Source: Auanema rhodensis
Taxonomy: Eukaryota; Animalia; Nematoda
Assembly: GCA_964057225.1 (NCBI GenBank)
Contig: OZ059899.1
Location: 10,168,001 to 10,232,000 of the forward strand
Length of the DNA stretch: 64,000 nt
Reading direction: 5' to 3'
Numbering within the stretch: the first letter of the stretch is position 1; the number at the start of each line of letters is the position of its first letter. A model generated the notes under the pieces. The model searched no databases, had not been told where the DNA came from, and saw only the letters and a program-made list of their open reading frames with translations. Below, piece by piece: positions 1 to 63,833 of the stretch. Made by a program: the position numbers and the translations under genes.

Positions 1-1129
1 TCTCTCATCACAATTGTCTTAGTTTTTTTTCTTATAAGAGTTTCTGAAATTTTAGGTGAACAAGGCCGTATATATTTTTTTCTGGAATTCGAAAGCATTT
101 GGGATGGAAATTAGAAAGAAAAGAACTAGTTTTTCCTATTTTAAAACAAACAAAAAAAATAAAATGAAAAAGATTGTTAGATATCCAATTTAAACTTATA
201 CATTTACTTCGATAAAGAGCCTATTAGTTTGAAATTTTATGTCTTACAGTTCTCCAACAGAACAGACTGATCCTGATATTTCTACGATTACATAAAACTC
301 TCGTTTGATATAAAAGCATATTGGATAGAAATTTCGAAAGCATTTGGGATGGAAATTAGAAAGAAACAAACTAGTTTTTCCTACTTTAAAACAAACAATG
401 AGAAACAAAATGAAAAGATTGTTAGATATCCAATTTTAACTTATACATTTACTTCGATGAAGAGCCTATTAGATTGAATTTTTATGTCTTACAGTTCTCC
501 AACAGAACAGACTGATCCTGATTTTTCTACGATTACATAAAACTCTCGTTTGATATACAAAAAGGAGAGGAATAACGTTTCCAGGATATCAATGATATCG
601 AATCTAGTGATATTGTAGAAAAATGTAATGTCAGCTCCATAGGTTTTCTTTTAATTTCTCTCATCACAATTGTCTCAGTTTTTTTTCTCATAAGAGTTTC
701 TGAAATCTTAGGTGTACAAGGCCGTATATATTTTCCTGGAATTCGAAAGGATTTGGGATGGAAATTAGAAAGAAAAGAACTAGTTTTTCCTACTTTAAAA
801 CAAACAATAGGAGATAAAATGAAAAAGATTGTTAGATATCCAATTTAAACTTATACATTTACTTCGATAAAGAGCCTATTAGTTTGAAATTTTATGTCTT
901 ACAGTTCTACAACAGAACAGACTGATCCTGATTTCTCTATGATTACATAAAACTCTCGTTTGATATACAAAAAGGAGAGGAATAACGTTTCCAGGATATC
1001 AATGATATCGAATCTAGTGATATTGTAGAAAAATGTAATGTCAGCTCCATAGGTTTTCTCTTAATTTCTCTCATCACAATTGTCTTAGTTTTTTTTCTCA
1101 TAAGAGTTTCTGAAATCTTAGTTGATCAA

Positions 1130-5258: not shown

Positions 5259-8091
5259 TTACATAAAACTCTCGTTTGATATAAAAAAAGAAGAGGAATA
5301 ACGTTTCCAGGATGTCAATGATATCGAATCTAGTGATATTGTAGAAAAATGTAATGTCAGCTCTATAGGTTTTCTCTTAATTTCTCTCATCACAATTGTC
5401 TTAGTTTTTTTTCTCATAAGAGTTTCTGAAATCTTAGGTGAACAAGGCCGTATATATTTTTTTCTGGAATTCGAAAGCATTTGGGATGGAAATTAGAAAG
5501 AAAAGAACTAGTTTTTCCTACTTTAAAACAAACAATAAGAAATAAAATAAAAAAGATTGTTAGATATCCAATTTAAACTTATACATTTACTTCGATAAAG
5601 AGCCTATTAGTTTGAAATTTTATGTCTTACAGTTCTCCAACAGAACAGACTGATCCTGATTTCTCTATGATTACATAAAACTCTCGTTTGATATAAAAAA
5701 AAGAAGAGGAATAACGTTTCCAGGATGTCAATGATATCGAATCTAGTGATATTGTAGAAAAATGTAATGTCAGCTCCATAGGTTTTCTCTTAATTTCTCT
5801 CATCACAATTGTCTTAGTTTTTTTTCTTATAAGAGTTTCTGAAATCTTAGGTGAACAAGGCCGTATATATTTTTTTCTGGAATTCGAAAGCATTTGGGAT
5901 GGAAATTAGAAAGAAAAGAACTAGTTTTTCCTACTTTAAAACAAACAATAAGAAATAAAATAAAAAAGATTGTTAGATATCCAATTTAAACTTATACATT
6001 TACTTCGATAAAGAGCCTATTAGTTAGAAATTTTATGTCTTACAGTTCTCCAACAGAACAGACTGATCCTGATTTCTCTATGATTACATAAAACTCTCGT
6101 TTGATATAAAAAAAAGAAGAGGAATAACGTTTCCAGGATGTCAATGATATCGAATCTAGTGATATTGTAGAAAAATGTAATGTCAGCTCCATAGGTTTTC
6201 TCTTAATTTCTCTCATCACAATTGTCTTAGTTTTTTTTCTTATAAGAGTTTCTGAAATCTTAGGTGAACAAGGCCGTATATATTTTTTTCTGGAATTCGA
6301 AAGCATTTGGGATGGAAATTAGAAAGAAAAGAACTAGTTTTTCCTACTTTAAAACAAACAATAAGAAATAAAATAAAAAAGATTGTTAGATATCCAATTT
6401 AAACTTATACATTTACTTCGATAGAGAGCCTATTAGTTTGAAATTTTATGTCTTACAGTTCTCCAACAGAACAGACTGATCCTGATTTCTCTATGATTAC
6501 ATAAAACTCTCGTTTGATATAAAAAAAGAAGAGGAATAACGTTTCCAGGATGTCAATGATATCGAATCTAGTGATATTGTAGAAAAATGTAATGTCAGCT
6601 CCATAGGTTTTCTCTTAATTTCTCTCATCACAATTGTCTCAGTTTTTTTTCTCATAAGAGTTTCTGAAATCTTAGGTGAACAAGGCCGTATATATTTTTT
6701 TCTGGAATTCGAAAGCATTTGGGATGGAAATTAGAAGGAAAAGAACTAGTTTTTCCTACTTTAAAACAAACAATAAGAAATAAAATAAAAAAGATTGTTA
6801 GATATCCAATTTAAACTTATACATTTACTTCGATAAAGAGCCTATTAGTTTGAAATTTTATGTCTTACAGTTCTCCAACAGAACAGACTGATCCTGATTT
6901 CTCTATGATTACATAAAACTCTCGTTTGATATAAAAAAAAGAAGAGGAATAACGTTTCCAGGATGTCAATGATATCGAATCTAGTGATATTGTAGAAAAA
7001 TGTAATGTCAGCTCCATAGGTTTTCTCTTAATTTCTCTCATCACAATTGTCTTAGTTTTTTTTCTTATAAGAGTTTCTGAAATCTTAGGTGAACAAGGCC
7101 GTATATATTTTTTTCTGGAATTCGAAAGCATTTGGGATGGATATTAGAAGGAAAAGAACTAGTTTTTCCTACTTTAAAACAAACAATAAGAAATAAAATA
7201 AAAAAGATTGTTAGATATCCAATTAAAACTTATACATTTACTTCGATAAAGAGCCTATTAGTTTGAAATTTTATGTCTTACAGTTCTCCAACAGAACAGA
7301 CTGATCCTGATTTCTCTATGATTACATAAAACTCTCGTTTGATATACAAAAAGTAGAGGAATAACGTTTCCAGGATGTCAATGATATCGAATCTAGTGGT
7401 ATTGTAAAAAAATGTAATGTCAGCTCCATAGGTTTTCTCTTAATTTCTCTCATCACAATTGTCTTAGTTTTTTTTCTCATAAGAGTTTCTGAAATCTTAG
7501 GTGAACAAGGCCGTATATATTTTTTTCTGGAATTCGAAAGCATTTGGGATGGAAATTAGAAGAAAAGAACTAGTTTTTCCTACTTTAAAACAAACAATAA
7601 GAAATAAAATAAAAAAGATTGTTAGATATCCAATTTAAACTTATACATTTACTTCGATAAAGAGCCTATTAGTTTGAAGTTTTATGTCTTACAGTTCTCC
7701 AACAGAACAGACTGATCCTGATTTCTCTATGATTACATAAAACTCTCGTTTGATATAAAAAAAGAAGAGGAATAACGTTTCCAGGATGTCAATGATATCG
7801 AATCTAGTGATATTGTAAAAAAATGTAATGTCAGCTCCATAGGTTTTCTCTTAATTTCTCTCATCACAATTGTCTTAGTTTTTTTTCTTATAAGAGTTTC
7901 TGAAATTTTAGGTGAACAAGGCCGTATATATTTTTTTCTGGAATTCGAAAGCATTTGGGATGGAAATTAGAAAGAAAAGAACTAGTTTTTCCTACTTTAA
8001 AACAAACAATAAGAAATAAAATAAAAAAGATTGTTAGATATCCAATTTAAACTTATACATTTATACATTCACTTATACATTCTGAAAAACT

Positions 8092-11063
8092 ATGAGTAAG
8101 TTTTTAAAACGTTTTAATGAGCCAATGTAAGCTATGAGTTTTCTCTAAATATTAATGTATCATTATCAGTGACACCGAAGAAATTTTTGATAAAGTTCCT
8201 CGGATCGATGAGTTTAAGAAGGGTGAATACTTTTTTTTCTTGAATAAAAATAAGGTTATAAATTGTGATGATTTGTCTTACGATCCGTATAAACCTTGGA
8301 CAGGAGATGGTATTTACTTCAATGATATAATTGTTTTGTCGACTTTGTTCATTTCAGATGAGCGTGGTGTTCGTGTTACCGCAAAAAGTACTAAGTATTA
8401 TTTAGTTTTTGTGAATGGCGAGTGGGTGCTTGATAAAACATCAAAATGTTTCCAAATGAAAGTTATGAAATATGCTCATGCTAGAGCTCCGGGTTTCAGA
8501 AGAGAAGTGTTTTATTATTTTTCAATGAATATATTATCATTTCTAACTAAGATTGCTTTCATCTCGGATATGAACAAGAATCTTCTCTCTCACGTATTAT
8601 TCGTGTATATAGCTGAGGTTAGTTATCTACAGGTACTTAATGATGACATTGAATAAAAACCATTTAGAAAGATTTGCAAGCTCCTGAAGAACTATCAAAT
8701 CGAATTTTACCTTCATCTTCTAAGGCCGTGAAATTGGCACTACATCACAGATCATCTTCGGAAGCTAAAAAACTACTAGCTTCAAATGGAGTTTCCGTCA
8801 CTTCCGCAAAGGTAAACATTTTTTATCAAAAAAAAAATATATATATATATCCTATGGCTTAAATTATTGCATTCTTCTTCAATGGAAATTAATATTTGTA
8901 ATTTTTCAGATTTCTAGTTTATCCCGCTCAGTAGAAACTCACGTTAAGAGTAATATAGGAAGAAAACCTCCATCTAATTATTATAAGATAATGGACAGAT
9001 ATTTGCTTAAACATCATCTAGAAGAAAGACTAGAAAAACCCTATATAGAGGTCAATGGTAAGTTTTTATTTTTTTTTGTTTTGTGATGTCTATTCCAGAA
9101 AGTGGAAAAATAGTGCTACGTATTTTGATGGGATATCCATCAGCAATAAAATGTTTCTGTAAGTCGCTTCCAGAAACTGAAGAACTTTTCGAGCATCGTG
9201 TTCATGTTCGCAGACTTTTTAATATGGACGAAAAAGACGCCACTTTTTTTTTGGCAAGCGAACAAACCAAGTATGAAAAAATATATCAGTGTTTCAGATT
9301 CTTTCCTACAAACAACAAATTTGAGTGGTAGTCTTCCTGTTGTTGGAAGTGCTATATTAGTGGATACTACTTTTAGTTTGAGTACTTCTGAATACGTCAC
9401 ATTAGCATATGGAGTATCCGAAGATTTCAGGTAGTTTCAAATTTTTTGTAATTGTATACTTTAATTCAGATCAAAAAAATCAGGAAAAAACAGTTCAATT
9501 CTATTAGGTTTCATGATTCATTCTGAAAAAAGCTATGAAAACCATTGTGCCTTTTCAAAATTTTTGAACCAACTATTTTTTGAATGCGATCAAAACAAGA
9601 GGGTGAACTGTGTTTTACATGATGGAGAGTCAGCGTTCATGTGCTATAATACCGTATTCATCTTTTGATTCGTTATGAACTTTCTATAGTAAATTTAGGG
9701 AGATATTCTAGGTGATGCGATTTCTTTACGTTGTGACACACATAGACTAGCTAATATCAAGGAAACTACAAAGAATAATAAAGCAGTATTCGAAAATTTA
9801 CAAGAAATGCTATACGGAAAGAAAAAAACGTTAGTTCAAGTTTTTCTATTATTTTTTTTTTTTGAGTGATATTCGAGGAACTATTCTATACAAAGGAATT
9901 TTAAATATTTTGAACAAAAACAAATATGAGGAGAAAATGGCAAATTTGATTAATTCAGAAGAAGAATCTACTGCATCATGGTTAGAACCATTTAAGTTTT
10001 TTTAAATTTATCGTTACACATTAGGCTCCGAAAAAACACGAACAGCTTGTTCGAACATAATTCCATGTTGAGAAAACTTGAAGGTGGATGGCCTTTGCAG
10101 TTTTTGACTACTAACATAATTGAAAGCCGTAATGCTCATATAAAAAACATAATCACTACTAAAAAACCAGCAGAAAAAGTTCTCAATGATTTTTTGTCAA
10201 TACACAAAGGTTTTTCTATTTTCTCACTTTTAAAAGGTTTTAGTTCAGAAGAGATATTAATGAGAATGAATGCTATATCTGGGGAAGAAAGCACCTTAAT
10301 CTCGAGAACGTTCTACGATAAATCTGCATGGAATCACTTTACACTGATGGAAAAAAAAAACATACTAACATCTTTCGGTCTCGATCATCTAATTATTGAT
10401 GACAAATATGACGATTTACCAAGATGGATCTTTTTGGGCTAGATACTACGATAATGTTACAAATTAACTAAATAATGCATTTCAGAAAGTAAATACGAAG
10501 AAGATGTCTTGATCGGTATAGTTGAAAACTTTGATGTACATAGGAGCGAGAAAAACAAATCTTTTTTTTTTGGAGTGAATAAAGAAACGAGAGAGTAAGT
10601 GTTTAAGAAATTCCAAAAATTTTAATTTTCAGGAGCACTTTTCTCGAAAATGACAACGGTAAATTGAACTGTCACAACATTATCTGCAGAAAAAGAAAAA
10701 CATTCATAGAGGCTGTTTGTCCACACAAGTGAGTTAAAAAAAAAGAAAAAAAAGTAAAAGTGTTATAGGATAGCTGTGATAACGTCGCTGAATAACGAAG
10801 AGAAAAAAAACATTTTGAGTGTACTGGAAGAAAACAAAACTAGCACTACTTGCTTGTCACAAATGAGAAAACAACAAAATCCAAATGATGGCACTAAGTT
10901 TAAATGTAGACGAGGCAAACAGTTCAGCCATAATAACAAAACGCGACGGTTTGTATCACTTGTTAAGTAAGTAATCTTTTTGAGAACAAAAGTAAAAAAC
11001 TCATTTAGCAATACAATGAGTAGTTTAAATTCAAGTATCGAAGAAGACGGAAATTTTATCTGA
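8092..11063 (+). CDS. Spliced MULE-type DDE transposase with C-terminal SWIM-like zinc finger (17 exons, ~711 aa), copy 1
   Basis: Manual splicing gives one open frame MSKFLKRFNEPIDTEEIF...SSIEEDGNFI*. Introns used: 8127-8169, 8310-8357, 8507-8551, 8618-8667, 8812-8909, 9058-9098, 9159-9297 (uncertain), 9431-9469, 9654-9698, 9830-9866, 9981-10024, 10210-10248, 10438-10485 (GC-AG), 10595-10632, 10729-10768, 10967-11008. Motifs: ILVDTTFSL (D at 9363), VLHDGESAF (D at 9621), LRCDTH (CxxH at 9732), LTTNIIESRN (E at 10122), LNCHNIIC-x10-CPH (SWIM-like). Confidence 0.85.
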
Positions 11064-11260
11064 TATGTGTTTTAAATTGAATTACACCTGTTTTTTTTTT
11101 GAGAAAAAATAATAGTTAATCTTTGGGGTTTACTTACACTTACACGCAAAACTGTTAAATTCATAAACATAGTTTAATGAGAAAGCAAACATTTGACTGA
11201 GAAGGGCAAAGAAATATTTTTCAACTAAGCACAATACTAAAAAAAAGGTCTATACAGTTC

Positions 11261-11323
11261 GTGTCTCGTGTCGCAATGGTGTCAAAATAGTGTCAATGTT
11301 TTAGTGTCAACGTAGAAATGCCC
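11261..11323 (+). repeat. Putative right terminal/subterminal region of the MULE with five GTGTC(AA) direct repeats
   Basis: GTGTC at 11261, 11268, 11279, 11290 and 11304, followed by aacgtagaaatgccc. Repeated at ~15266-15328 and ~19272-19334. Confidence 0.7.
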
Positions 11324-11392
11324 GCGTGGCGCAATGGATAACGCGTCTGCCTACGGAGCAGAAGATTGTAGGTTCGAATCCTGCCGTGGTCG
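11320..11392 (+). tRNA. tRNA-Arg(ACG), chimeric 5' end (GCCC instead of GGCC) at MULE junction
   Basis: Identical to other copies from nt 3 onward. C2 mispairs with T71. Confidence 0.85.
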
Positions 11393-12072
11393 TAAATTTT
11401 TTTCATTTCACTTGTCATTTACAAAAATCAAATTTATCTTCTTCAACGATTATTTTTGCAATGTGTCATAAAAATTTCACAGTTGAACAAAACGTTTTTT
11501 AAGAATTTTTTTTGTTGTCAACATATATATTTTCCTGGAATTCGAAAGCATTTGGGATGGAAATTAGAAAGAAAAGAACTAGTTTTTCCTATTTTAAAAC
11601 AAACAAAAAAAAATAAAATGAAAAAGATTGTTAGATATCCAATTTAAACTTATACATTTACTTCGATAAAGAGCCTATTAGTTTGAAATTTTATGTCTTA
11701 CAGTTCTCCAACAGAACAGACTGATCCTGATTTCTCTATGATTACATAAAACTCTCGTTTGATATAAAAAAAGAAGAGGAATAACGTTTCCAGGATGTCA
11801 ATGATATCGAATCTAGTGATATTGTAAAAAAATGTAATGTCAGCTCCATAGGTTTTCTCTTAATTTCTCTCATCACAATTGTCTTAGTTTTTTTTCTCAT
11901 AAGAGTTTCTGAAATTTTAGGTGAACAAGGCCGTATATATTTTTTTCTGGAATTCGAAAGCATTTGGGATGGAAATTAGAAAGAAAAGAACTAGTTTTTC
12001 CTACTTTAAAACAAACAATAAGAAATAAAATAAAAAAGATTGTTAGATATCCAATTTAAACTTATACATTTA

Positions 12073-15000
12073 TACATTCACTTATACATTCTGAAAAACT
12101 ATGAGTAAGTTTTTAAAACGTTTTAATGAGCCAATGTAAGCTATGAGTTTTCTCTAAATATTAATGTATCATTATCAGTGACACCGAAGAAATTTTTGAT
12201 AAAGTTCCTCGGATCGATGAGTTTAAGAAGGGTGAATACTTTTTTTTCTTGAATAAAAATAAGGTTATAAATTGTGATGATTTGTCTTACAATCCGTATA
12301 AACCTTGGACAGGAGATGGTATTTACTTCAATGATATAATTGTTTTGTCGACTTTGTTCATTTCAGATGAGCGTGGTGTTCGTGTTACCGCAAAAAGTAC
12401 TAAGTATTATTTAGTTTTTGTGAATGGCGAGTGGGTGCTTGATAAAACATCAAAATGTTTCCAAATGAAAGTTATGAAATATGCTCATGCTAGAGCTCCG
12501 GGTTTCAGAAGAGAAGTGTTTTATTATTTTTCAATGAATATATTATCATTTCTAACTAAGATTGCTTTCATCTCGGATATGAACAAGAATCTTCTCTCTC
12601 ACGTATTATTCGTGTATATAGCTGAGGTTAGTTATCTACAGGTACTTAATGATGACATTGAATAAAAACCATTTAGAAAGATTTGCAAGCTCCTGAAGAA
12701 CTATCAAATCGAATTTTACCTTCATCTTCTAAGGCCGTGAAATTGGCACTACATCACAGATCATCTTCGGAAGCTAAAAAACTACTAGCTTCAAATGGAG
12801 TTTCCGTCACTTCCGCAAAGGTAAACATTTTTTATCAAAAAAAAAAAATATATATATATCCTATGGCTTAAATTATTGCATTCTTCTTCAATGGAAATTA
12901 ATATTTGTAATTTTTCAGATTTCTAGTTTATCCCGCTCAGTAGAAACTCACGTTAAGAGTAATATAGGAAGAAAACCTTCATCTAATTATTATAAGATAA
13001 TGGACAGATATTTGCTTAAACATCATCTAGAAGAAAGACTAGAAAAACCCTATATAGAGGTCAATGGTAAGTTTTTATTTTTTTTTGTTTTGTGATGTCT
13101 ATTCCAGAAAGTGGAAAAATAGTGCTACGTATTTTGATGGGATATCCATCAGCAATAAAATGTTTCTGTAAGTCGCTTCCAGAAACTGAAGAACTTTTCG
13201 AGCATCGTGTTCATGTTCGCAGACTTTTTAATATGGACGAAAAAGACGCCACTTTTTTTTTGGCAAGCGAACAAACCAAGTATGAAAAAATATATCAGTG
13301 TTTCAGATTCTTTCCTACAAACAACAAATTTGAGTGGTAGTCTTCCTGTTGTTGGAAGTGCTATATTAGTGGATACTACTTTTAGTTTGAGTACTTCTGA
13401 ATACGTCACATTAGCATATGGAGTATCCGAAGATTTCAGGTAGTTTCAAATTTTTTGTAATTGTATACTTTAATTCAGATCAAAAAAATCAGGAAAAAAC
13501 AGTTCAATTCTATTAGGTTTCATGATTCATTCTGAAAAAAGCTATGAAAACCATTGTGCCTTTTCAAAATTTTTGAACCAACTATTTTTTGAATGCGATC
13601 AAAACAAGAGGGTGAACTGTGTTTTACATGATGGAGAGTCAGCGTTCATGTGCTATAATACCGTATTCATCTTTTGATTCGTTATGAACTTTCTATAGTA
13701 AATTTAGGGAGATATTCTAGGTGATGCGATTTCTTTACGTTGTGACACACATAGACTAGCTAATATCAAGGAAACTACAAAGAATAATAAAGCAGTATTC
13801 GAAAATTTACAAGAAATGCTATACGGAAAGAAAAAAACGTTAGTTCAAGTTTTTCTATTATTTTTTTTTTGAGTGATATTCGAGGAACTATTCTATACAA
13901 AGGAATTTTAAATATTTTGAACAAAAACAAATATGAGGAGAAAATGGCAAATTTGATTAATTCAGAAGAAGAATCTACTGCATCATGGTTAGAACCATTT
14001 AAGTTTTTTTAAATTTATCGTTAGACATTAGGCTCCGAAAAAACACGAACAGCTTGTTCGAACATAATTCCATGTTGAGAAAACTTGAAGGTGGATGGCC
14101 TTTGCAGTTTTTGACTACTAACATAATTGAAAGCCGTAATGCTCATATAAAAAACATAATCACTACTAAAAAACCAGCAGAAAAAGTTCTCAATGATTTT
14201 TTGTCAATACACAAAGGTTTTTCTATTTTCTCACTTTTAAAAGGTTTTAGTTCAGAAGAGATATTAATGAGAATGAATGCTATATCTGGGGAAGAAAGCA
14301 CCTTAATCTCGAGAACGTTCTACGATAAATCTGCATGGAATCACTTTACACTGATGGAAAAAAAAAACATACTAACATCTTTCGGTCTCGATCATCTAAT
14401 TATTGATGACAAATATGACGATTTACCAAGATGGATCTTTTTGGGCTAGATACTACGATAATGTTACAAATTAACTAAATAATGCATTTCAGAAAGTAAA
14501 TACGAAGAAGATGTCTTGATCGGTATAGTTGAAAACTTTGATGTACATAGGAGCGAGAAAAACAAATCTTTTTTTTTTGGAGTGAATAAAGAAACGAGAG
14601 AGTAAGTGTTTAAGAAATTCCAAAAATTTTAATTTTCAGGAGCACTTTTCTCGAAAATGACAACGGTAAATTGAACTGTCACAACATTATCTGCAGAAAA
14701 AGAAAAACATTCATAGAGGCTGTTTGTCCACACAAGTGAGTTAAAAAAAAAGAAAAAAAAGTAAAAGTGTTATAGGATAGCTGTGATAACGTCGCTGAAT
14801 AACGAAGAGAAAAAAAACATTTTGAGTGTACTGGAAGAAAACAAAACTAGCACTACTTGCTTGTCACAAATGAGAAAACAACAAAATCCAAATGATGGCA
14901 CTAAGTTTAAATGTAGACGAGGCAAACAGTTCAGCCATAATAACAAAACGCGACGGTTTGTATCACTTGTTAAGTAAGTAATCTTTTTGAGAACAAAAGT

Positions 15001-15328
15001 AAAAAACTCATTTAGCAATACAATGAGTAGTTTAAATTCAAGTATCGAAGAAGACGGAAATTTTATCTGATATGTGTTTTAAATTGAATTACACCTGTTT
15101 TTTTTTGAGAAAAAATAATAGTTAATCTTTGGGGTTTACTTACACTTACACGCAAAACTGTTAAATTCATAAACATAGTTTAATGAGAAAGCAAACATTT
15201 GACTGAGAAGGGCAAAGAAATATTTTTCAACTAAGCACAATACTAAAAAAAGGTCTATACAGTTCGTGTCTCGTGTCGCAATGGTGTCAAAATAGTGTCA
15301 ATGTTTTAGTGTCAACGTAGAAATGCCC
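12073..15328 (+). mobile_element. Mutator-like DNA transposon, copy 2, left end truncated
   Basis: Near-identical to copy 1 (a few SNPs and homopolymer length differences). Confidence 0.85.
12101..15070 (+). CDS. Spliced MULE-type DDE transposase, copy 2
   Basis: Same exon structure and catalytic motifs as copy 1. Carries YDPY>YNPY and KPP>KPS substitutions. Confidence 0.85.
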
Positions 15329-15397
15329 GCGTGGCGCAATGGATAACGCGTCTGCCTACGGAGCAGAAGATTGTAGGTTCGAATCCTGCCGTGGTCG
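15325..15397 (+). tRNA. tRNA-Arg(ACG), chimeric 5' end at MULE junction
   Basis: Same as the 11320 copy. Confidence 0.85.
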
Positions 15398-16077: not shown

Positions 16078-19000
16078 TACATTCACTTATACATTCTGAA
16101 AAACTATGAGTAAGTTTTTAAAACGTTTTAATGAGCCAATGTAAGCTATGAGTTTTCTCTAAATATTAATGTATCATTATCAGTGACACCGAAGAAATTT
16201 TTGATAAAGTTCCTCGGATCGATGAGTTTAAGAAGGGTGAATACTTTTTTTTCTTGAATAAAAATAAGGTTATAAATTGTGATGATTTGTCTTACGATCC
16301 GTATAAACCTTGGACAGGAGATGGTATTTACTTCAATGATATAATTGTTTTGTCGACTTTGTTCATTTCAGATGAGCGTGGTGTTCGTGTTACCGCAAAA
16401 AGTACTAAGTATTATTTAGTTTTTGTGAATGGCGAGTGGGTGCTTGATAAAACATCAAAATGTTTCCAAATGAAAGTTATGAAATATGCTCATGCTAGAG
16501 CTCCGGGTTTCAGAAGAGAAGTGTTTTATTATTTTTCAATGAATATATTATCATTTCTAACTAAGATTGCTTTCATCTCGGATATGAACAAGAATCTTCT
16601 CTCTCACGTATTATTCGTGTATATAGCTGAGGTTAGTTATCTACAGGTACTTAATGATGACATTGAATAAAAACCATTTAGAAAGATTTGCAAGCTCCTG
16701 AAGAACTATCAAATCGAATTTTACCTTCATCTTCTAAGGCCGTGAAATTGGCACTACATCACAGATCATCTTCGGAAGCTAAAAAACTACTAGCTTCAAA
16801 TGGAGTTTCCGTCACTTCCGCAAAGGTAAACATTTTTTATCAAAAAAAAAAAATATATATATATCCTATGGCTTAAATTATTGCATTCTTCTTCAATGGA
16901 AATTAATATTTGTAATTTTTCAGATTTCTAGTTTATCCCGCTCAGTAGAAACTCACGTTAAGAGTAATATAGGAAGAAAACCTTCATCTAATTATTATAA
17001 GATAATGGACAGATATTTGCTTAAACATCATCTAGAAGAAAGACTAGAAAAACCCTATATAGAGGTCAATGGTAAGTTTTTATTTTTTTTTGTTTTGTGA
17101 TGTCTATTCCAGAAAGTGGAAAAATAGTGCTACGTATTTTGATGGGATATCCATCAGCAATAAAATGTTTCTGTAAGTCGCTTCCAGAAACTGAAGAACT
17201 TTTCGAGCATCGTGTTCATGTTCGCAGACTTTTTAATATGGACGAAAAAGACGCCACTTTTTTTTTGGCAAGCGAACAAACCAAGTATGAAAAAATATAT
17301 CAGTGTTTCAGATTCTTTCCTACAAACAACAAATTTGAGTGGTAGTCTTCCTGTTGTTGGAAGTGCTATATTAGTGGATACTACTTTTAGTTTGAGTACT
17401 TCTGAATACGTCACATTAGCATATGGAGTATCCGAAGATTTCAGGTAGTTTCAAATTTTTTGTAATTGTATACTTTAATTCAGATCAAAAAAATCAGGAA
17501 AAAACAGTTCAATTCTATTAGGTTTCATGATTCATTCTGAAAAAAGCTATGAAAACCATTGTGCCTTTTCAAAATTTTTGAACCAACTATTTTTTGAATG
17601 CGATCAAAACAAGAGGGTGAACTGTGTTTTACATGATGGAGAGTCAGCGTTCATGTGCTATAATACCGTATTCATCTTTTGATTCGTTATGAACTTTCTA
17701 TAGTAAATTTAGGGAGATATTCTAGGTGATGCGATTTCTTTACGTTGTGACACACATAGACTAGCTAATATCAAGGAAACTACAAAGAATAATAAAGCAG
17801 TATTCGAAAATTTACAAGAAATGCTATACGGAAAGAAAAAAACGTTAGTTCAAGTTTTTCTATTATTTTTTTTTTGAGTGATATTCGAGGAACTATTCTA
17901 TACAAAGGAATTTTAAATATTTTGAACAAAAACAAATATGAGGAGAAAATGGCAAATTTGATTAATTCAGAAGAAGAATCTACTGCATCATGGTTAGAAC
18001 CATTTAAGTTTTTTTAAATTTATCGTTAGACATTAGGCTCCGAAAAAACACGAACAGCTTGTTCGAACATAATTCCATGTTGAGAAAACTTGAAGGTGGA
18101 TGGCCTTTGCAGTTTTTGACTACTAACATAATTGAAAGCCGTAATGCTCATATAAAAAACATAATCACTACTAAAAAACCAGCAGAAAAAGTTCTCAATG
18201 ATTTTTTGTCAATACACAAAGGTTTTTCTATTTTCTCACTTTTAAAAGGTTTTAGTTCAGAAGAGATATTAATGAGAATGAATGCTATATCTGGGGAAGA
18301 AAGCACCTTAATCTCGAGAACGTTCTACGATAAATCTGCATGGAATCACTTTACACTGATGGAAAAAAAAAACATACTAACATCTTTCGGTCTCGATCAT
18401 CTAATTATTGATGACAAATATGACGATTTACCAAGATGGATCTTTTTGGGCTAGATACTACGATAATGTTACAAATTAACTAAATAATGCATTTCAGAAA
18501 GTAAATACGAAGAAGATGTCTTGATCGGTATAGTTGAAAACTTTGATGTACATAGGAGCGAGAAAAACAAATCTTTTTTTTTTGGAGTGAATAAAGAAAC
18601 GAGAGAGTAAGTGTTTAAGAAATTCCAAAAATTTTAATTTTCAGGAGCACTTTTCTCGAAAATGACAACGGTAAATTGAACTGTCACAACATTATCTGCA
18701 GAAAAAGAAAAACATTCATAGAGGCTGTTTGTCCACACAAGTGAGTTAAAAAAAAAGAAAAAAAAGTAAAAGTGTTATAGGATAGCTGTGATAACGTCGC
18801 TGAATAACGAAGAGAAAAAAAACATTTTGAGTGTACTGGAAGAAAACAAAACTAGCACTACTTGCTTGTCACAAATGAGAAAACAACAAAATCCAAATGA
18901 TGGCACTAAGTTTAAATGTAGACGAGGCAAACAGTTCAGCCATAATAACAAAACGCGACGGTTTGTATCACTTGTTAAGTAAGTAATCTTTTTGAGAACA

Positions 19001-19334
19001 AAAGTAAAAAACTCATTTAGCAATACAATGAGTAGTTTAAATTCAAGTATCGAAGAAGACGGAAATTTTATCTGATATGTGTTTTAAATTGAATTACACC
19101 TGTTTTTTTTTGAGAAAAAATAATAGTTAATCTTTGGGGTTTACTTACACTTACACGCAAAACTGTTAAATTCATAAACATAGTTTAATGAGAAAGCAAA
19201 CATTTGACTGAGAAGGGCAAAGAAATATTTTTCAACTAAGCACAATACTAAAAAAAAGGTCTATACAGTTCGTGTCTCGTGTCGCAATGGTGTCAAAATA
19301 GTGTCAATGTTTTAGTGTCAACGTAGAAATGCCC
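16078..19334 (+). mobile_element. Mutator-like DNA transposon, copy 3, left end truncated
   Basis: Near-identical to copies 1 and 2. Confidence 0.85.
16106..19075 (+). CDS. Spliced MULE-type DDE transposase, copy 3
   Basis: Same exon structure and motifs. YDPY as in copy 1, KPS as in copy 2. Confidence 0.85.
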
Positions 19335-19403
19335 GCGTGGCGCAATGGATAACGCGTCTGCCTACGGAGCAGAAGATTGTAGGTTCGAATCCTGCCGTGG
19401 TCG
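19331..19403 (+). tRNA. tRNA-Arg(ACG), chimeric 5' end at MULE junction
   Basis: Same as the 11320 copy. Confidence 0.85.
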
Positions 19404-62207: not shown

Positions 62208-62279
62208 GGCCGCGTGGCGCAATGGATAACGCGTCTGCCTACGGAGCAGAAGATTGTAGGTTCGAATCCTGCCGTGTCG
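62208..62279 (+). pseudogene. tRNA-Arg(ACG) with 1-nt deletion in the 3' acceptor strand
   Basis: Reads ...gccgtgtcg rather than ...gccgtggtcg (72 nt). It could be a sequencing error. Confidence 0.6.
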
Positions 62280-62815: not shown

Positions 62816-62888
62816 GGCCGCGTGGCGCAATGGATAACGCGTCTGCCTACGGAGCAGAAGATTGTAGGTTCGAATCCTGCCGTGGTCG
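62816..62888 (+). tRNA. tRNA-Arg(ACG)
   Basis: Same 73-nt sequence. The upstream flank is ggtgaacaa type. Confidence 0.97.
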
Positions 62889-63833
62889 TAAATTTTTTTC
62901 ATTTCACTTGTCATTTACAAAAATTAAATTTATCTTCTTCAACGATTATTTTTGCAATGTGTCATAAAAATTTCACAGTTGAACAAAAAGTTTTTTGAGA
63001 ATTTTTTTTGTTGTCAACATATATATTTTCCTGGAATTCGAAAGCATTTGGGATGGAAATTAGAAAGAAAAGAACTAGTTTTTCCTATTTTAAAACAAAC
63101 AAAAAAAATAAAATGAAAAAGATTGTTAGATATCCAATTTAAACTTATACATTTACTTCGATAAAGAGCCTATTAGTTTGAAATTTTATGTCTTACAGTT
63201 CTCCAACAGAACAGACTGATCCTGATTTCTCTATGATTACATAAAACTCTCGTTTGATATACAAAAAGGAGAGGAATAACGTGTCCAGGATATCAATGAT
63301 ATCGAATCTAGTGATATTGTAGAAAAATGTAATGTCAGCTCCATAGGTTTTCTCTTAATTTCTCTCATTACAATTGTCTTAGTTTTTTTTCTCATAAGAG
63401 TTTCTGAAATCTTAGGTGAACAAGGCCGTATATATTTTTTTCTGGAATTCGAAAGCATTTGGGATGGAAATTAGAAAGAAAAGAACTAGTTTTTCCTACT
63501 TTAAAACAAACAATAAGAAATAAAATAAAAAAGATTGTTAGATATCCAATTTAAACTTATACATTTACTTCGATAAAGAGCCTATTAGTTTGAAATTTTA
63601 TGTCTTACAGTTCTCCAACAGAACAGACTGATCCTGATTTCTCTATGATTACATAAAACTCTCGTTTGATATACAAAAAGGAGAGGAATAACGTTTCCAG
63701 GATATCAATGATATCGAATCTAGTGATATTGTAGAAAAATGTAATGTCAGCTCCATAGTTTTTCTCTAAATTTCTCTCATCACAATAGTCTTATTTTTTT
63801 TTCATAAGAGTTTCTGAAATCTTAGTTGAACAA

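Follow-up and report, generated by a model that had tools for sequence, protein, structure and literature searches.

The locus

The stretch of DNA analyzed here (the window) spans 64,000 nucleotides (nt) of the nematode Auanema rhodensis (also A. rhodense), and the whole of it is one tandem array that carries 21 tRNA-Arg(ACG) genes, all on the + strand. These genes are 60% GC in an array of 28% GC and make up 2.6% of its bases, which agrees with the few percent estimated in an earlier reading made without database searches (the sequence-only reading). The sole foreign DNA in the array is a 3.26-kb element present in three copies (starting at 8064, 12073, and 16078), with a tandem unit of about 4005 nt. 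It is a Mutator-like element (MULE) of an Auanema lineage, and its right tip abuts a tRNA-Arg gene at nt 4 (or 5). This junction is real DNA, goes back to one event and belongs to a damaged copy. Both junctions are common to all three copies, which differ at only 2-8 positions over 3.3 kb; they therefore represent a single insertion event, as had been cautioned earlier, and the remnant was triplicated along with the array. Two sequences from Auanema sp. JU1783 serve as the comparison below, the protein CAI4220887.1 (P0001) and the 3319-nt contig CALQYR020003942.1 (L001). The features of the window are as follows.

1-64000, +: host array of 412-nt gene-less units (28% GC) and 606-609-nt units with tRNA-Arg(ACG) (60% GC)
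8049-8082, +: left junction; satellite to 8063, then about 19 nt resembling satellite-flank copies (ACTTATACATT motif), no inverted repeat
8064-11322, +: first copy of the Mutator-like element, which keeps its right tip and lacks the left end
8092-11063, +: probably decayed transposase gene of about 740-760 codons, interrupted by about 17 introns (37-98 nt), from exon-by-exon comparison with P0001 and L001
9363-9374, +: first catalytic D (DTTF), in an exon 61% identical to P0001 284-324
9621-9743, +: second catalytic D (DGE, 9621) and CxxH (CDTH, 9732), with an intron between them
10107-10124, +: catalytic E (TTNIIE)
10670-10726, +: SWIM-like zinc finger, C-x4-C-x10-C-x-H (weak match to the same place in L001)
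11260-11322, +: right terminal repeat, a terminal motif ending in CC and five GTGTC subterminal repeats
11267-11279, +: subterminal 13-mer that shares 12 of 13 bases with the A-box region of the tRNA (nt 6-18)
11320-11392, +: tRNA-Arg(ACG), first 3 (or 4) bases element-derived, C2-U71 mismatch; presumed target 9-mer at nt 4-12 (or 5-13)
11397-11403, +: T7 terminator of RNA polymerase III (Pol III)
12073-15397, +: copy 2, element and tRNA (tandem unit of about 4005 nt)
16078-19403, +: copy 3, element and tRNA

Transposase gene and class of the element

Three-frame translation of the window element gives the motifs DTTF, DGE, CDTH, and TTNIIE in this order, which is conserved in P0001; together with the SWIM-like finger these are the MULE motifs that the sequence-only reading had named (9363, 9621, 9732, 10107, and 10670-10726). 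The window exons are colinear with P0001 at 25-64% identity (42-64% in the core exons) and have intron positions in common with it. A full HMMER scan with the exon at 10026-10436, which is 48% identical to P0001, returned P0001 (E 1.6e-21), a Caenorhabditis elegans fragment (P0003) and P0002, a sigma-70-region protein that was set aside as a chance match. Word-index protein searches with one exon and two P0001 regions, which see only proteins of similar length, returned P0001 only. The nearest Atlas clusters of P0001 are MULE transposases (features 0.95; structure template modelling score 0.83 over the MULE domain). Neither the window exons nor P0001 matched the MULE entry of Pfam, the SWIM-like finger had no Pfam hit, and sequence searches of Pfam and the Protein Data Bank gave only a weak DUF7747 match. 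The single-sequence AlphaFold model, with a predicted local distance difference test score of 36, was unusable.

By its motifs, the structure of its relative and the inverted ends, the element is a MULE, and the lineage has been seen so far only in Auanema nematodes. The earlier naming of the element as a candidate Mutator transposon is supported. Membership in Dada, a transposon superfamily that inserts in small RNA genes, was rejected, as the lineage has 146-nt inverted repeats, CxxH rather than DxxH, and a SWIM-like finger instead of CCCC/CCHC fingers.

The window element is a damaged copy that has lost its left end and promoter. Its transposase gene seems to contain a one-base frameshift near a T9 run (9244-9252), unless a donor at 9159 is used, which skips 32 codons. 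The donor at 10438 is a weak GC. The letters at both places are confirmed by the reads, and from these features the transposase is probably decayed. Only 28 nt precede the ATG, compared with 215 in L001, and no left inverted repeat of the element occurs anywhere in the window. The copy is therefore immobile as it stands.

The right end of the element

The L001 contig consists of the element only. It starts with GG, ends with CC, and has inverted repeats of 146 nt that are 86% identical. When its right end was compared with every 60-mer of the window on both strands, the top match ended at 11322, along with the equivalent sites of copies 2 and 3, at 46 compared with 38 for the best unrelated 60-mer. 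As in Muta1, short repeats follow a terminal motif that starts with G, both at the right tip in the window and at the L001 ends. Judged by this alignment, the junction is the true tip of the element, at 11322 (best register) or at 11323, given that the end of the L001 contig could be one base off. The tRNA accordingly resumes at nt 4 (tip at 11322) or at nt 5 (tip at 11323). The sequence-only reading had also taken this junction for a terminus, placing it at 11323; the tip stands, and the best register makes it one base shorter. A deletion breakpoint, named there as the finding that would overturn it, is largely refuted at the right junction, which lies no more than one base from where L001 puts the tip.

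In the public runs X1 and X3 a single unitig (8971-11351) crosses the right junction; contigs in X3 and X5 cross the left one. Because contigs span both, neither junction is an assembly artefact. A two-allele break at 8970 in the read contigs agrees with a difference between the assembled copies.

The tRNA-Arg(ACG) gene at the junction

The tRNA copies at 11320, 15325, and 19331 read ..GTAGAAAT GCCC GCGTGG, whereas the remaining 18 tRNA-Arg(ACG) genes read CAA GGCC GCGTGG, so that the contrast between GCCC and GGCC first described for this locus is borne out at 3 and 18 copies and in the read contigs of two runs. The element-linked gene is indeed a full 73-nt gene with A box, B box and T7 terminator intact, and the single acceptor mismatch already reported is its sole change (G2>C), turning the G2-U71 wobble into a C2-U71 mismatch. 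The predicted fold goes from -25.2 kcal/mol (GGCC) to -20.7 kcal/mol (GCCC), a cost of 4.5 kcal/mol, and its centroid has an open acceptor end.

The sequence-only reading regarded this full-length gene as the outcome of a strategy of target repair. That part of it is not supported: the match between the tip and the start of the tRNA lies within chance, with GCC given for GGC (2 of 3 bases, p 0.16) or GCCC for GGCC (3 of 4, p 0.05), and the closing CC of the tip is a trait of the element family. The type 2 Pol III promoter is internal, and an insertion 5' of the A box with duplication of the target leaves the whole promoter downstream. For this reason a whole tRNA gene follows the element, and since MULE tips end in CC, the apparent repair is read as a by-product that is no better than chance. 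There is also little selection for repair of a tRNA, because only one unit in six of a very large array carries the gene, which has hundreds of copies.

Target choice

Under uniform insertion, 3.1% of the 9-mers of the array would touch a tRNA and 0.2% would start at nt 1-6. Chance alone is therefore an unlikely source of the position, even though the window was picked for this feature. The best account of the junction, with a probability of roughly 0.5, is that it was made by the transposase of a lineage with a regional bias towards Pol III genes. In this account, the transposase would have made the right junction with a target duplication of about 9 nt over tRNA nt 4-12, 9 nt being the length expected for the superfamily (PMC6446971). 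The landing in a tRNA would reflect a bias towards a region and not towards one nucleotide: the satellite is AT-rich and probably silent and germline-limited, and the tRNA genes would be its only GC-rich, open DNA; contact with Pol III factors may help the targeting, and insertions in tRNA genes would be tolerated given hundreds of gene copies. A later deletion took the left end, the promoter and the left target copy, and what was left was triplicated with the array.

Several points weigh against this account. All evidence on targeting comes from one insertion event, so the earlier proposal of targeting holds insofar as the position is unlikely under uniform insertion, and targeting by the family is a candidate reading. 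The target duplication, 8-11 nt in MULEs, is unreadable because the left side is deleted, and L001, which comes without flanking DNA, is mute on its target. In C. elegans, the 4.3-kb contig of K06B9.4 contains no tRNA, and the ends of that element are not recognisable. Maize Mu shows no enrichment at tRNA genes (PMC7337890; 10.64898/2026.05.18.725947); open GC-rich DNA alone, therefore, does not draw every MULE to tRNA. The array is probably germline-limited and silent, a state that we infer, and the published A. rhodense repeat probes did not match the 412/606-609-nt satellite. A search for independent insertions with the terminal 21-mer of the element in metagenome contigs gave 0 matches, and no second insertion with flanks was reached. 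P0001 was likewise not found in the metagenome contigs.

A bolder form of the regional bias is possible, although it is put forward tentatively and at somewhat less than even odds. Here, Auanema would harbor a true Mutator lineage with dedicated Pol III targeting, through contact with TFIIIB/TFIIIC or by recognizing A-box-like sequence of the kind present in its own ends, for which germline-limited tRNA arrays would be a safe harbour; cut-and-paste at tRNA 5' ends may also have made the satellite deletion described below. If the preference is real, targeting of small RNA genes would have arisen independently a second time in eukaryotic DNA transposons, and in a superfamily whose model member stays away from tRNA genes; it would also link transposon survival to germline-limited DNA. 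The window copy alone is a damaged single witness. MULE transposases are active both in vitro and in yeast (Muta1), and a laboratory nematode has an apparently complete relative, so the basis of target choice is directly testable; a real preference could also yield a compact tool for safe-harbour insertion.

The alternative that survives best, which we consider rather unlikely, is that the family has no real preference and that an ordinary MULE with a mild liking for GC landed by chance in a tRNA of a tRNA-rich genome, such cases being the ones that survive and get noticed. There is only a single event to explain. All array 9-mers with at least 7 G/C touch a tRNA, those with 8 G/C start at nt 1-5, and only a handful, five in all with the presumed target, make up the GC-richest group. 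With a weight of 2 per G/C, 17% of insertions would touch a tRNA and 5% would start at nt 1-6; by a rough count that assumes 33-36% GC, some 20,000 tRNA genes hold as many of the GC-richest 9-mers as 60 Mb of ordinary DNA. In the array, the four letters that are fixed in the duplication motif of maize Mu (C.C...G.G) also occur only at tRNA nt 4-12, bar one variant site. Even with the doubling, however, five of six insertions would be expected in the satellite, and the GC bias of maize Mu, which favors open, GC-rich regions, is mild (56% vs. 47%; PMC2774946). Taken over all 15 nt, the Mu motif reaches only 5 of 12 at the presumed target, no better than at its neighbours, so the agreement of the four letters is selective and a hint only.

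Improbable is a sequence-specific, Dada-like targeting with evolved repair, in which the transposase would read the A-box region and cut at a fixed place, and the tip would have been selected to restore the acceptor stem. The 13-mer of the terminal repeat agrees with the A-box region at 12 of 13 bases, a score reached in 0 of 3000 shuffles for a comparison chosen after the fact, and Dada ends share short motifs with their targets, with many Dada sites in the A box (PMC3706591, PMC8869645); an old deletion in the array also breaks 1-2 nt from the same spot. Yet about half of the mimic (6 of 13 bases) consists of the motif units of the terminal repeat itself, L001 lacks the mimic (best 10 of 13), and the restoration is the partial, weaker stem given above, in a gene whose hundreds of copies leave little selection for repair. 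Finally, it is very improbable that the right junction arose by deletion, by recombination or as an assembly artefact: a breakpoint of this kind does form the left end, a 2-3 nt microhomology is found at the right junction, and the old array deletion breaks at the same place, but the agreement with the L001 tip and the unitigs from two runs largely refute it.

Comparison with known systems

The closest system is the Auanema sp. JU1783 element (P0001/L001), which resembles the window element in its colinear transposase, shared introns, GG-starting terminal repeat with short subterminal repeats, and length of 3.3 kb. It is apparently complete with both 146-nt inverted repeats, whereas the window copy keeps only the homologous right end. 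L001:1-3319 is an unannotated MULE, and the annotation divides its gene into two. Bases 3-4 are not the same at its two ends, and the repeat motif GGTGTA is similar to the A box of some tRNAs. A more distant relative is C. elegans K06B9.4 (P0008, L002), which has the same catalytic motifs at 26-30% identity to P0001 and differs from the window lineage in its broken frames, its MSP-like tail, and the lack of inverted ends or a tRNA in its contig. It appears as a broken relative of the window transposase with an MSP-like tail at L002:1487-4199.

Muta1 of Aedes aegypti (PMC5499845) and maize Mu share with the window element a DDE transposase with CxxH, a putative SWIM-like finger, G-starting ends, short tandem subterminal repeats, and a length of about 3.2 kb. 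Maize Mu prefers Pol II gene starts and not tRNA (PMC7337890; 10.64898/2026.05.18.725947), whereas the window copy lies in a tRNA gene and has lost one end. A literature search found no paper on MULEs aimed at tRNA genes. Target-biased MULEs are already known: MuTAnT (PMC4486113) prefers a harmless repeat, as proposed here, but its targets are plant TA microsatellites and not Pol III genes.

Dada (PMC3706591, PMC8869645) is likewise a DNA transposon that sits close to the A box of small RNA genes with many copies, and its subterminal DNA has a motif in common with the target. Unlike the window lineage, it has no terminal inverted repeats, carries DxxH, duplicates 6-7 nt at nt 8-13 or in the anticodon arm, measures 4.7-11 kb, and has one target per family; the window junction at nt 4-5 lies upstream of the Dada A-box site at nt 8-13. 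The window element may work like Dada though it is not Dada. Ty1/Ty3 and TRE5, as they are cited in PMC7337890 and PMC3706591, are associated with Pol III genes under a tethering model, but they are retroelements whose insertions lie beside and not inside the gene.

The left junction and copy number

The satellite stops 266 nt before the expected start of the tRNA, and this side lacks 266 nt or more of satellite along with the tRNA 5' part and the left end of the element. The flank motif ACTTATACATT occurs twice at the left junction (8049-8082), which resembles an insertion templated during end-joining repair. In both X1 and X9, contigs begin exactly at 8083; at this branch point the samples may contain a different upstream sequence, which is perhaps the missing left end.

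The 5' portion of the element (8083-8817) has a depth 16-70% above the rest in all four runs, and there is a branch at 8651 in run X5 and a 95%-identical piece at 8857-8978 in run X1. A further partial copy of the element elsewhere is probably behind the extra 5' depth. Among the matches listed for the read contigs, no other contig reached at least 80% on the terminal repeat, and no left end or second close copy was seen. The element is absent from the listed RNA runs, from which silence does not follow.

In run X1, the element depth is 38 for three copies, compared with about 30 for long contigs with dispersed tRNAs, as would be expected of germline DNA that is under-represented. The tRNA and the splice signals of the window are nematode-like. 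In A. rhodense there are 19,554 tRNA genes, and about 61% of the genome is eliminated from the soma, including tRNA arrays and 167-504-nt repeats (10.64898/2026.08.27.747507).

Satellite units of the array

The 412-nt satellite unit corresponds to the tRNA unit minus about 197-199 nt, from tRNA nt 5-6 to about 130 nt beyond the gene (7914-7935 vs. 62816-63025). The left break of this satellite deletion is 1-2 nt from the position of the element junction, and the spot may be a hot spot or an older excision scar. Adjoining the deletion, the host sequence at 11510-11530, found 130 nt 3' of each tRNA, is 76% like the subterminal end of the element over 21 nt. The host motif TTGTCAAC, 130 nt past the tRNA, was considered as a cryptic end behind the satellite deletion and rejected, as the break falls 1 nt after the motif whereas the element tip falls 11 nt after it. 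Two further variants were observed in the array: the tRNA-Arg copy at 62208-62279 has one base missing in its 3' acceptor strand, and a satellite unit at the start of the window (88-557) has a 245-nt deletion.

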